A stretch of DNA of 62,183 nucleotides, counting the filler, from Choristocarpus tenellus KU-1152 (lineage: Eukaryota > Protista > Phaeophyceae), in assembly GCA_964200185.2 (NCBI GenBank). It is 11 parts of 11 records of this genome, joined end to end, with 100 filler letters (N's around TTAATTAATTAA, not from the genome) between each part and the next. Parts side by side here need not be neighbours in the genome. Positions count along the whole stretch, not along the records: positions 41,866 to 45,654 come from CAXNAD020017911.1; 10 more parts are not named here. One strand, written 5' to 3'. The first letter of the stretch is position 1. Each line of letters begins with the position of its first letter. A program made the translations under genes and the position numbers. Below the pieces are notes generated by a model. That model did not search any database. It saw only the letters and a program-made list of their open reading frames with translations, and was not told the DNA's origin. Shown one piece after another: positions 41,866-45,654 of this stretch.

Positions 41866-41944
41866 ATGAGGGGGCAACGCAGGGGGCAGCGCAGGCAACG
41901 AAAGCCACGCCCTTGCTGTGGGAGCAACTGTCATGGTGTTTTCG

Positions 41945-42740
41945 GGCAACAGGCGGTCTTGGGCAGTGAGAAGGTCTAGGAGTGAATTGAATTTGAAGCC
42001 GGGCATACGATGTTTGAATTTGAAGAGACCCATCGGACCAAAATGAAATCCGTGTTCTGGAAAACGCGTTTATTCTCGCTGCGATGAAATAAAAACTAGA
42101 TTCTAATCTGGCTTCAGGCAACAGTCGGTCTTGGGCACGATAGAATTGAATTCGACGCCGGGCGTATGAATGATGTTTGAGTTACGGGCGATCTGTCGGA
42201 CCACCCTGAAATCCATGATCCGGAAAATACGTGCATTATGGTTTTTAGAAATTAAAAATTCGATTATATTCGTAATTTCAAGAAATAAAAATACAAACTA
42301 CATACTTACTTGATCTTATACGTTTCAAATGTTCCGAAACTAAAAGGTCACAAAAAACTTACACTTTCTATCTGTTTTAAATATGAAATCGTATACTGTT
42401 CGATATTCACACTTTTTGGAACACAAGTATCAACGTAAAGAGAAATCTGATGTTCTTTAGGCACTGACCGACCAGCCTGAAATCCATGTTCTTGAAAATA
42501 CGTGTATTCTAGTTTTTATGAAATAAAAATTATACTCTATTCTTAATATCAACAAATAAAGATACAAACCATATACTTGATCTTATACATTTCAAATGTT
42601 CCGAAACTAAAAGGTCACAAAAAACTTACACTTTCTATCTGTTTTATATATGAAATCGTATACTGTTTGATATTCATATTTTTTGGAACACAGTTATCAA
42701 CGGAAAGAGAAATCTGAGTTCTTTGGGCACCGACCGAACA
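41945..42740. repeat. Nested direct repeats upstream of the ParB-like gene: ~170-bp pair (41945/42117) and ~270-bp pair (42206/42477)
   Basis: ggcaacag.cggtcttgggca twice; tttcaaatgttccgaaactaaaaggtcacaaaaaacttacactttctatctgtttta twice; tgaaatcc.tg three times. Confidence 0.9.
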
Positions 42741-42856
42741 GATGAAATAAAGCAGCACCTCCCAGCCCTCACTCCTCATTTCCATTCCTTCCCTTCTGCA
42801 CATACCACCAGCAGCTCTTTCTTATCTATCCCCGAAATACCTTCCCAATCTTCACC

Positions 42857-45654
42857 ATGTCAAACATTCGCTCAAAAACGACCCCCCTGCGCGCCAGTGA
42901 CGCTGCCCACGGATCGAGAGCATCGGACAGCAATGCCAAGGGCATGTCCTCGCTCCTCAAACAGCACTACCTCGGCATTTACAAGATGAAACTCGGCAAC
43001 ATCACATGCACGGAGATAGTGCGTCCCCTGAGCGAGTGTGGTCTTGCGCGCGTCAGCAAGTCCATCCGTGAAAAAGGCTGGCTCGAGCAGTTTGTTCCGT
43101 CCATTGTCATCCAACGAGACTGCTTAGGCAACGGGGATCAGCTCACCGCCGACACTGCGCTTGCCGTTCAAGGACGAACACTGGACGGAAACCATAGAAC
43201 AACAGTGTTGAAGAGAGAGTTTGATCACGAATGCGCTTTCATGATGAGGGTCTACATGGAGTTCAACCAAGCAGAAGAAAGGCTAATTGCCAACAGTGAG
43301 TGATCATTAGTGTTGTCGTTGTTCCTTGATTGCCCGAAGACTCTTTTGATCTACCAAGTTGTTGCCGTGTTTCCTTTGTTTAGTTCATCGTCAGTCAGTC
43401 CGTTTTTGGTCTTTTCGTTGTTGATCTTTTTTATCCCTCGTGGTCTTTCTGTCAGCAGCAACATTTTGCTCACTACTACCTTCCGCATGTGTCCTGCGAC
43501 CACTTCCCACCTACCCCTTGCCCCGTTCGCCCACGGCACCGCCACGCTTATAGCATTCAACGACGCGACCGAGAGTGTGGTTGAGCGCACGATGTACAAT
43601 AAGGTATATTTTCAGCACGAGCTCCAAGAAGCTATCAAGCGCCAGACAAGGAAGAAAGAAGTGTCACTAGCTGAGATCCGCAAAATATACAAAAAGGTGA
43701 GGGAGTTGTCAACGTTGGTGGGATGGTGGCGCTCTACTCTTCCTCTTGTTGGGTTGCAGCTGTTGTGAAGATCTCTCTATGTCCTCCTATTCAACCTAAG
43801 TTCAGATAGTTATCCCGCGTTTAGCAACCCTGTCAACCAAATGCTTGATTTTCGGGCGACCATGTAGTATGTGTGTGTGCAAAATCACAGACGAAGTGAA
43901 CAGTTTCTTCTTTTAGCACTAGGTAGGCCAGGCCGCTGAGTATCATACCCCACCCCCCCACTCCTCCCCCGGGTAAGGTCCACTCGAGGGGGACCGTTGC
44001 AGTGTTGCCTGAATTAATAAACACACGATGCGTCCTTTTGTGAACCAAACCCTCTCCTTCGTGGGCAACCACATGCTGTGTCTGTGTTGTATACACACGA
44101 ACAATAAAAAGCGTTCGTGTTTGTTTTATCGTTAGGCCAGGCCGCTGAATAACACCCCCCCCACATTCATACATACCCCGTTGGCGTGGTAATAACGATG
44201 CCTTATCCTGGCTGGCTGAGTGCATCATATTTTTCTATTCTGCGCATCGCGAAAGTGGGCGTTACTCCCCCGCCGAAAACAATTCTACGAAACTGGCAGC
44301 AAGGCGTAAAGCCTCTTCAACCAGAGTCCTTCGAGGTACTGAAGGAAGTGTGCGAGACTTCGTCACCGCAGGTCAACCGCAACGCGGTCACACTGAGCTA
44401 TCTGAGTCGCGAGGAGTTTGCCGGCTTCACTTCTCTGAAGCAGGGGCTATGCATCCGTCTGCTTGCGAGGCAAGTCAAACCACCACTGTGTTTTATCGTG
44501 TAGACAGCAGCAAGCGGCATGTGTGCCGGTCGCAGCACCTTCTACAGGAACGTTCAATTAGTGTCTCCTACGATGAAGACCGTAGTCGGGCATTGTTGTA
44601 TCGAACGACGAACCGTTTGTAGTACTGCGGAAGGACTACCTGCAGTGTGTGTTTCCTGTGTATGTGTGATCTTGTCTTTTCTGAACTACAACAATCGTTC
44701 CATAGAATATTTTCTGCAGTGGCGACCCTTTACTCATCATTACCTGCGCATCATTCTCGTTGACGTCCTTCATTGCCATTCTCTTTTTGCAGGTACAAGT
44801 CGTTCAATGAGAAGACTCCTACGGCGAGGGACTACAAGGAGATCGAATCGGACGCGCACATATCCGAGATGCTTATCTCACGCACCAGGCAGATTGTACC
44901 CAAGGAGAAGTGGACACCAGAGATCCAAAGGTTGGTAAATGGTGCAGTTGCAGCAGTTCTCTTTTTTTGCCTTTTCCGTATCTCCTGCGCACCCATACGT
45001 CAACATGCACCCCTCAATTGCAAAATGTGCTGTCAGCATCTTTTTTGGCACCGTACTGATTGATTGTTGCAAAAGTGCTCTGCACTTGGGGACGTTGCGT
45101 GAATGATGCACGGGCTGCCAGAGATATGGACAGGCTTGCATTTGAGAGTACCTCATTCCCGCCTACAACACGTGTCACTGTCGTAACCTACAGACAGGCT
45201 GGCGTCCTCGACAATGACTTCTTTCAAACTAATTCGCCCCGCAAGTCGCTTCCATTAGACGCGTTAACCACGTCAACCGTATTGTTTGTCTGCTCGATTG
45301 ACATGCTATCGTTCTTCATTACACCCTCCCATCTCTTACGTCACAAGCGTCTCCTCCTCTCCTCAACAATGTTCTCCGCCATGTCCACCACCAGATTCTC
45401 GAGAAGGACTCGACGCTACGCACTTACCTCACCACCTGGGATGGGAAATACCAGGATGTCCTCAACCAGGTCAACTTCCATCAGGTCCACAGCAGGCGAG
45501 GGGGCGGTGATGGCAGCGGCGCCGACGTCAAGAGCAACAACGGATCGTCATCAGATGGCGGGGAGAAACAAGATGAGGGAGGGGACAAAGGTGAGGGAGG
45601 GGATGAAGGCGAGGGAGGGGACGAAGGCGAGGGAGGGGATGAAGGCGAGGGAGG
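42857..45654 (+). CDS. ParB/Srx-domain protein with probable HTH and acidic Gly repeat, 3'-truncated; exons 42857-43295, 43554-43696, ~44255-44469, 44793-44930, 45194-45240, 45348->45654
   Basis: Exon 1: IVRPLSECGLARVSKSIREKGWL...PSIVI...LDGNHRTTVLK...MRVY..FNQAEERLIAN|TFN, the ParB N-terminal fold pattern. Exon phases are compatible, with GC donors (GCAAGT) at 44470 and 45241. The in-frame exon-3 acceptor reads AA rather than AG. The last exon ends in (GEGGDE)n. Confidence 0.75.

Follow-up and report, generated by a model that had tools for sequence, protein, structure and literature searches.

The gene and its structure

The stretch of DNA analysed here, which we refer to as the window, comprises 62,183 nucleotides from the brown alga Choristocarpus tenellus KU-1152 (GenBank assembly GCA_964200185.2), with 11 parts of 11 records joined end to end and 100 filler letters between each part and the next; one of these parts, at positions 41866-45654 (CAXNAD020017911.1), encodes a ParB-like protein. 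In this piece an AT-rich repeated region (41941-42748) is followed by a five-exon gene on the + strand (42857-45654), and the contig ends inside an acidic GEGGDE repeat with the reading frame open. In our view the piece is likely to represent a single copy of a repeat that is high in copy number and probably carried by a transposon in a brown alga, C. tenellus or a very close relative, with an intron-containing ParB-like accessory gene. An earlier interpretation made without database searches (the sequence-only reading) had spliced the gene by hand and quoted a series of peptides, all of which are present and in the order given. Its layout of exons holds, with the corrections that exon 5 starts at 45395 and not at 45348, and that the acceptor of intron 2 is AA in this copy. 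The parts of the gene are as follows.

42857-43295, + strand: exon 1, with an ATG start and a GTGAGT donor, encoding a low-complexity N-terminus and then the core of a ParB/Srx-type N-domain (from the open reading frame and homologue matches); its end, also on the + strand, encodes the ERLIAN helix, which is ParB box III-like
43181-43198, + strand: LDGNHR, within exon 1
43296-43553, + strand: intron 1, GT..AG, phase 1; the junction IAN-T-FND agrees with the spliced proteins P0013 and P0015
43554-43696, + strand: exon 2, encoding a linker helix and the first helix of a helix-turn-helix (HTH), SLAEIRKIYKK (43664-43696)
43697-44254, + strand: intron 2, GT..AA in this copy, containing a 48-nt direct repeat pair at 43924-43971 and 44133-44180 (family D6)
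44255-44469, + strand: exon 3, encoding the HTH recognition helix, VGVTPPPKTILRNW, at 44255-44296, then the first part of a helical middle region, and ending at a GC donor
44470-44792, + strand: intron 3, GC..AG, with the donor GCAAGT
44793-44934, + strand: exon 4, encoding more of the helical middle region
44935-45394, + strand: intron 4, GT..AG, its acceptor preceded by a long pyrimidine tract
45395-45654 and beyond, + strand: exon 5, encoding a conserved ILEKDSTLRTYLTTWDGKYQ segment and then a Gly/Asp/Glu-rich linker, in which 18-nt repeats coding (GEGGDE)n begin at about 45570 (repeat family D1); open at the contig end

The window exons were searched singly against other sequences, including three loci of an ENA assembly (L001, L002 and L005) and annotated brown-algal proteins. 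Exon 2 is 70% identical to residues 104-150 of P0015 and 53% identical to P0013, and is collinear in L005; exon 3 is 63% identical to L005 1755-1964 and aligns with P0013, P0073 and P0037; exon 4 shows 57-60% identity to L001, L002 and L005 and a weak match to residues 256-288 of P0037; and exon 5 is 62% identical to L005 9430-9540. At the three ENA loci all five exons are collinear with those of the window at 50-63% amino-acid identity, with introns of different lengths (intron 3 there is about 5 kb). Because the five exons are collinear elsewhere and DGNHR is kept in most of the 137 divergent clusters of the family, we regard the gene as more than a product of chance.

The junctions of exons 1 and 2 and of exons 2 and 3 are backed by the annotated spliced proteins P0013, P0015, P0073 and P0037. 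Contigs of three public runs (X1, X2 and X3) were also aligned to the piece, and those of X3 include one spliced across the joint of exons 2 and 3 (43696>44255, both=3) and two across that of exons 3 and 4 (44467>44791, equivalent to 44469>44793, both=3). The acceptor of exon 5 reads ccaccAG/ATT at 45395, and the exon is placed there because in L005, given a TAA and no alternative AG, the equivalent CAG/GTG site is the sole possibility; three X3 contigs break off at exactly this position. The consensus preceding the break in those contigs, AGAATAAAACCAACACAACGGGTCAGAGCC (agreement 0.63), does not match the letters with which exon 4 of the window closes, and may derive from a further exon upstream or from paralogues that have diverged. 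At its intron 2 acceptor this copy has gaaAA/GTGGGC, as against gaAG/GTGGGT in L005, a mutation of AG to AA; the next AG lies one base later, and its use would lead to a frameshift into a stop.

A family of brown-algal proteins

Searches with exon 1 matched only brown-algal or eukaryote-like fragments (E 1e-50 to 1e-17), the best of them, at 83% identity, from C. tenellus, and an exhaustive profile search collected 137 clusters at 50% identity. Most of 143 family proteins retain the motif DG[NA]HR. All of the named members come from brown algae (Choristocarpus, Sphacelaria, Pylaiella, Ectocarpus and Cladosiphon); Pylaiella has six copies, at least 90% identical, on six different contigs, and the Cladosiphon member P0080 is a full-length gene model of 843 aa. 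Across species there is clear selection on the family taken as a whole.

No close relative among prokaryotes or viruses came to light; tblastn searches of phage records with the N-terminal and C-terminal regions gave chance-level matches only. In a word-indexed protein search full-length P0080 recovered only itself and its C-terminal part nothing. Horizontal acquisition, as put forward in the sequence-only reading, may be regarded as plausible for a gene of this architecture, with bacteria or phages as the putative source. Bacterial or phage contamination is rejected because introns, spliced contigs and brown-algal homologues are all present, and the view that the gene is eukaryotic and spliced is borne out by the annotated spliced proteins and the spliced X3 contigs.

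The N-terminal domain and helix-turn-helix

The fold was tested on the homologue P0080, whose residues 1-400 were modelled with AlphaFold2 from an alignment of 130 rows (A4) that leaves out exon 3 and 4 fragments, which an earlier alignment (A3) had misplaced on the N-domain. Predicted local distance difference test (pLDDT) values are 78-98 over residues 30-140 and 75-90 over residues 160-250. All of the top 50 matches of a Foldseek search of the PDB are ParB, KorB, Noc, pNOB8 ParB, PadC, SbnI or sulfiredoxin. Alignment of the model by VIA-align gives Z 10.5 to the ParB and Noc N-domains bound to cytidine triphosphate (CTP) or diphosphate (CDP) (7ng0, 7bnr and 7bnk; root-mean-square deviation 2.1-2.4 over 94-95 residues) and Z 10.3 to KorB (8qa9_B, 136 residues), with the top 26 rows all of the ParB/Srx fold and the first unrelated row at Z 6.2.

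The structural match includes the HTH because the KorB alignment spans model residues 38-220, with similar spans for Noc (7nfu_A, 146 residues) and ParB (6t1f_B, 132 residues), while that of pNOB8 ParB runs from 24 to 277. The HTH helices of P0080 (191-200 and 209-221) fall within the part of the model that KorB, Noc and ParB cover, and their equivalents in the window are encoded at 43664-43696 and 44255-44296. Since exon 1 can be aligned with residues 25-146 of P0080, and exons 2 and 3 with its HTH region, the ParB and HTH assignment carries over to the window by homology.

Matches in BFVD and the ESM Atlas are likewise all ParB-like, among them one phage cluster with PF02195 and PF01555. Comparison by hhalign of A4 with seven phage ParB_N-N6_N4_Mtase fusions, verified with Pfam, gives a probability of 79% (E 1.7e-5), pairing SIrekGW with SIrEFGF, LDGNHRvaAlK with iaGhxRxxAA (G-h-x-R), and the ERIIAN..N helix with a box III-like helix. 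Weaker profile matches are to phrog_1033, 'ParB-like partition protein' (E 0.0024), and to TIGR03187, 'DGQHR domain' (E 0.028, weak), and 28 of the 130 members have sub-threshold Pfam matches to DUF1015 (14), GmrSD_N (8), DndB (4) or ddrB-ParB (2).

Several results tell against this assignment. The protein that was modelled and matched is a homologue with about 33% identity to exon 1 and not the window's own protein, for which an AlphaFold2 model of exon 1 from a 10-row alignment reached a pLDDT of only 52.7 and was set aside. ParB_N (PF02195) matches no exon and no member, and searches of PDB sequences by phmmer and hmmsearch, with exon 1 and alignments A1, A4 and A5 as queries, returned neither a ParB nor a methyltransferase. 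Pfam searches were blank for each exon, even at E up to 10, and for ten longer members. The fold matches of P0080, which are decisive here, and the profile match to phage ParB_N nonetheless support the proposal of the sequence-only reading, that the family N-domain has a ParB/Srx-type fold followed by an HTH.

The C-terminal region beyond the contig end

It had further been proposed that a C-terminal effector, such as an N6A or N4C methyltransferase, lies past the break in the contig. There is indeed a further domain in four species: in P0080, Ectocarpus L006, L005 and Pylaiella L003 the acidic linker is followed by a Cys-rich segment and then by a conserved domain of about 250 aa, which is collinear in all four and lies outside the window. 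Its identity as an N6/N4 methyltransferase is a lead for which a search of ESM features speaks and to which profile tests lend no support. The feature search with P0080:590-843 returned clusters of PF01555 (N6_N4_Mtase) in 23 of 30 matches, with a score of 0.91, and the scaffold motifs, read by eye, follow the order of beta-class enzymes, with LHPxGT for LkpgG, DxxLIAH, and GRRxExFV for lgRxxiGiE.

Three results weaken this lead: when the C-terminal family was compared with 11 PF01555 proteins by hhalign, the probability was below 1%, also with Pylaiella and Ectocarpus fragments included; a profile search of the PDB with the C-terminal domain found no methyltransferase; and a second ESM Atlas query, with the Ectocarpus C-terminal exon, gave no signal. 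Pfam finds no PF01555, no ParB C-terminal domain and no KorB domain in full-length P0080. Neither the (D/N/S)PP(Y/F/W) catalytic motif nor the FxGxG S-adenosylmethionine-binding motif was found in the C-terminal domains of the four species. At the positions that motif order suggests by eye, DPPY is replaced by NRAP, PGVN, GAEP or AADP, and DPFxGSGT by TFTAESDG, TLTADKDG, SLSAEKHS or VTAFEHNP.

These replacements in every species examined, the blank profile searches and the position of the domain outside the window make it unlikely that the C-terminal partner is an active N6A/N4C DNA methyltransferase with which the protein methylates its own element, even though the ESM clusters and the order of scaffold motifs point that way, phage fusions have the same order of ParB and then methyltransferase, and the corresponding domain of an Ectocarpus protein is named a DNA methyltransferase in print (PMC12477816). 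That the domain is derived from a methyltransferase and is probably inactive is plausible, as a lead and not a result.

Copy number and the state of this copy

Short contigs align to the piece at 90-99% identity in large numbers, 3,033 from X1 and 2,457 from X2, and are spread over exons, introns and the sequence upstream without distinction. The C. tenellus contig L018, 3 kb long, matches 41866-43959 with 86-92% identity, and its exons (91% and 88%) are no better kept than its introns (88% and 95%). In exon 1 the two copies differ by 7 synonymous and 25 nonsynonymous codons, and the ATG is lost in L018. Judged by these differences in sequence, the window copy and L018 diverge neutrally, like dead transposon copies. 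The contig counts and the neutral divergence agree with the earlier suggestion that the gene is carried by a repeated, probably mobile element.

The gene cannot be taken as intact, given its broken splice acceptor and neutral drift. Because it is truncated by the contig end, mutated at the intron 2 acceptor and drifting neutrally, this copy is probably not functional.

Relationship to known systems

The closest described counterpart is Sola1-1_Ec32, a 21.5-kb DNA transposon of Ectocarpus with 282-bp terminal inverted repeats (TIRs) and 1,989 annotated copies or fragments, which carries an accessory gene for a ParB-like and DNA-methyltransferase protein of 1104 aa (PMC12477816). Like that gene, the family described here is brown-algal and intron-containing, encodes a ParB-like N-terminus with a putative N6/N4 methyltransferase-type domain after it, and lies on a repeated element; unlike the published description, methyltransferase motifs are absent from the four members examined and Pfam recognises neither domain. 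Related reports cited in PMC12477816 include those of Iyer et al. 2011 on green algae and Petroll et al. 2025 on PAG3 of red-algal Plavaka elements. In the Plavaka elements of the red alga Bostrychia, PAG3 combines ParB with a 2-oxoglutarate oxygenase and the gene is adjoined by tandem inverted repeats (bioRxiv 10.1101/2025.02.11.637652); a tandem repeat array (267 bp x 2.1) similarly adjoins the ParB-like gene of the window. In 2015, fusions of Dam-type methylases with a ParB-type HTH were reported from chlorophytes and chytrids (PMC4738411).

ParB_N-N6_N4_Mtase fusions are enriched in phages (PMC12704722), and these proteins (PF02195 and PF01555), of which the Wolbachia phage WO DNA methylase (L009:934-2160) is an example covered over at least 80% of its length by 323 phage records, share their domain order with the algal family. 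The phage fusions are 350-500 aa long, intronless and recognised by Pfam, with DPPY and FxGxG, whereas the algal proteins add the HTH, about 250 aa of helices, the Cys-rich segment and the acidic linker, and lack the catalytic motifs. The module had been put forward as undescribed; this novelty is not upheld because ParB-like and DNA-methyltransferase genes on giant algal transposons (PMC12477816) and common phage fusions (PMC12704722) have already been published. The window gene is a new, probably defective, member of the recently described accessory genes of algal transposons.

Similarity to the ParB, KorB and Noc clamps resides in the fold of the N-domain (Z 10.3-10.5), the HTH directly after it, the GxxR-type motif and the box III-like A..N helix. 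The algal family differs from them in its low identity (about 12-16%), in having no ParA-binding peptide or recognisable C-terminal dimerisation domain, and in being eukaryotic and multi-copy; none of the genes called in the fetched loci is ParA-like. DndB, GmrSD_N (DUF262) and DUF1015 have in common with the family a motif of the D-G-x-H/Q-R type (DGQHR or DGQQR), but the matches fall far below curated cut-offs, and there is no Dnd or GmrD context. Sulfiredoxin, the ParB/Srx-fold protein usual in eukaryotes, shares the core fold (Z 7-8.3) but is a single-domain protein of about 100-130 aa with its catalytic Cys in GCHR, where the algal family has GNHR followed by the HTH and several hundred residues.

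Nature of the repeated element

The label 'transposon' is used because of the copy number, the neutral decay of copies and the analogy with published elements. Two points weigh on the other side: in the 3.8-kb piece and the fetched loci no transposase, TIR or target-site duplication was seen, including none of Sola1 type in the fetched loci (transposase or TIR), and the accessory protein of Sola1-1_Ec32 was compared with the family by description only.

The lack of a transposase or TIR adjoining the gene in any fetched locus would also fit a host gene family that has expanded in brown algae, for instance one of chromatin or DNA-binding regulators, that is not mobile and whose copies are segmental or tandem duplicates, and in the same direction point the spliced X3 transcripts and the intron positions and exon order, which are kept across distant brown algae as in an old, vertically inherited gene. 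Such a family would have to account for thousands of contigs at 90-99% identity, with introns and upstream sequence as densely covered as exons, for the neutral divergence of copies, for the six near-identical Pylaiella copies on different contigs, and for the position of the published Ectocarpus ParB and methyltransferase gene within a Sola1 transposon (PMC12477816). We think this explanation improbable.

It is very improbable indeed that the piece is left over from a giant virus that had integrated, as a phaeovirus-like provirus with a ParB-like gene of viral origin, for although brown-algal genomes commonly carry phaeovirus insertions, the ParB/Srx fold occurs in giant viruses and Orpheovirus and Yasminevirus rows are among the BFVD matches, the gene has four spliceosomal introns conserved across species, one of them GC-AG, its copies number in the hundreds, and tblastn against virus records was empty (a weak result, the collection being one of phages).

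Upstream repeats and a possible function

The repeats upstream of the gene are possible sites of action of its product. They comprise the following features, to none of which a strand is assigned.

41941-42170: two direct repeat units of about 163-172 bp, upstream of the gene (families D5, D7 and D3)
42199-42748: AT-rich tandem array, with a period of 267 and 2.1 copies at 87% matches by Tandem Repeats Finder (families D2/D4)
42380-42407 and 42648-42673: imperfect palindromes around GTATAC, one per array unit (inverted repeats I2/I3)

The array ends 109 bp upstream of the ATG and recurs in C. tenellus contig L018. Its palindromes, of 26-28 bp and 76-81% complementary, are candidates for binding sites or for a promoter; they resemble parS-like sites, a likeness that could be due to chance in AT-rich DNA. 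The number of direct-repeat units differs among copies, with joints at 41985>42149/42150/42164 in X1 and X2 contigs that omit one unit.

The full-length protein, to judge from the order seen in Cladosiphon, Ectocarpus, Pylaiella and an ENA assembly, would consist of a ParB/Srx-fold nucleotide-binding N-domain (with DGNHR, of GxxR type), the HTH, the helical middle region, the acidic linker, the Cys-rich segment and the C-terminal domain. In such a protein the HTH would most likely bind repeated sites on the element's own DNA, for which the 267-bp array with its GTATAC palindromes is the candidate, and the DGNHR N-domain, by analogy with ParB, KorB and Noc, would bind nucleoside triphosphates (NTPs) and act in dimerisation or as a clamp switch. 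The C-terminal domain would then serve as a DNA-binding or scaffold module and not as an active methylase, and the protein would in this way regulate the element that encodes it, for instance by marking, coating, bridging, silencing or tethering it.

A more specific proposal, which is tentative and which we would call possible but doubtful, is that the family is a brown-alga-wide, transposon-encoded eukaryotic ParB, an NTP-gated clamp whose fused methyltransferase has become a catalytically dead DNA-binding scaffold; it would load on the tandem palindromic repeats of its own element and spread or bridge there, so that the element is tethered, silenced or protected. ParB-fold NTPase switches are known above all from chromosome and plasmid segregation in bacteria, and this would, if true, be the first ParB-type NTP-switch DNA clamp acting on nuclear chromatin. 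Should the protein bind its own element in an NTP-dependent manner, it would also offer a tractable example of self-regulation by a giant transposon.

Reports of the spread of the ParB fold into eukaryotic mobile elements are only just beginning. To these are added here that the brown-algal version is a large and old family, whose 137 clusters extend from Choristocarpus to the Ectocarpales and go undetected by Pfam, that its N-domain and HTH form a module that is structurally ParB-like in the models, with DGNHR in most members, and that the C-terminal partner may be a dead methyltransferase.

Further observations in the window and at related loci

The direct repeat pair in intron 2 begins with TAGGCCAGGCCGCTGA, followed by C-rich runs, and its units are 209 bp apart. 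The pair may mark the ends of a small nested insertion, and since read depth is minimal at the bin 43898-44024 in intron 2, many copies may be without it.

Most database entries of the family are fragmentary or chimeric models. One of these is P0100 (L006 1973-5814), an NCBI Ectocarpus model that joins about 320 residues of an unrelated upstream open reading frame (ORF) to the ParB-type N-domain and stops in an intron. For annotation, such loci are better masked as repeats than called as host genes. A protein of 567 aa with ten tandem repeats (…IIIGRSGIVVAGVGV…TILDG…), P0114, matched the exon 1 profile at E 2.9e-7; the match looks spurious and driven by the repeats, and the protein was left out of the alignments.

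At L004 9998-10420, in the same ENA assembly as L001, L002 and L005, there is an exon 1 that is 54% identical to that of the window, with no recognisable exons 2-5 before a downstream ORF 2.4 kb away; this paralogue is probably an internally deleted copy. A conserved ORF is found downstream of the ParB-type gene and on the same strand at three loci (L005 12819-13679, L004 12834-13304 and L006 11659-12288), with 37-56% identity among them (LF.iDg.nYd.G..DLP.WG...RLLHVA...LYLRV). Pfam was blank for it, and it may either belong to the same protein, as its final exon, or constitute a second accessory gene.

Upstream of the orthologous gene in L001, a long interspersed nuclear element (LINE)-type ORF of 1199 aa (L001 1-96; Exo_endo_phos and RVT_1) ends about 10 kb away, and the introns of L001, L002 and L005 are rich in short repeats that they have in common with L004.

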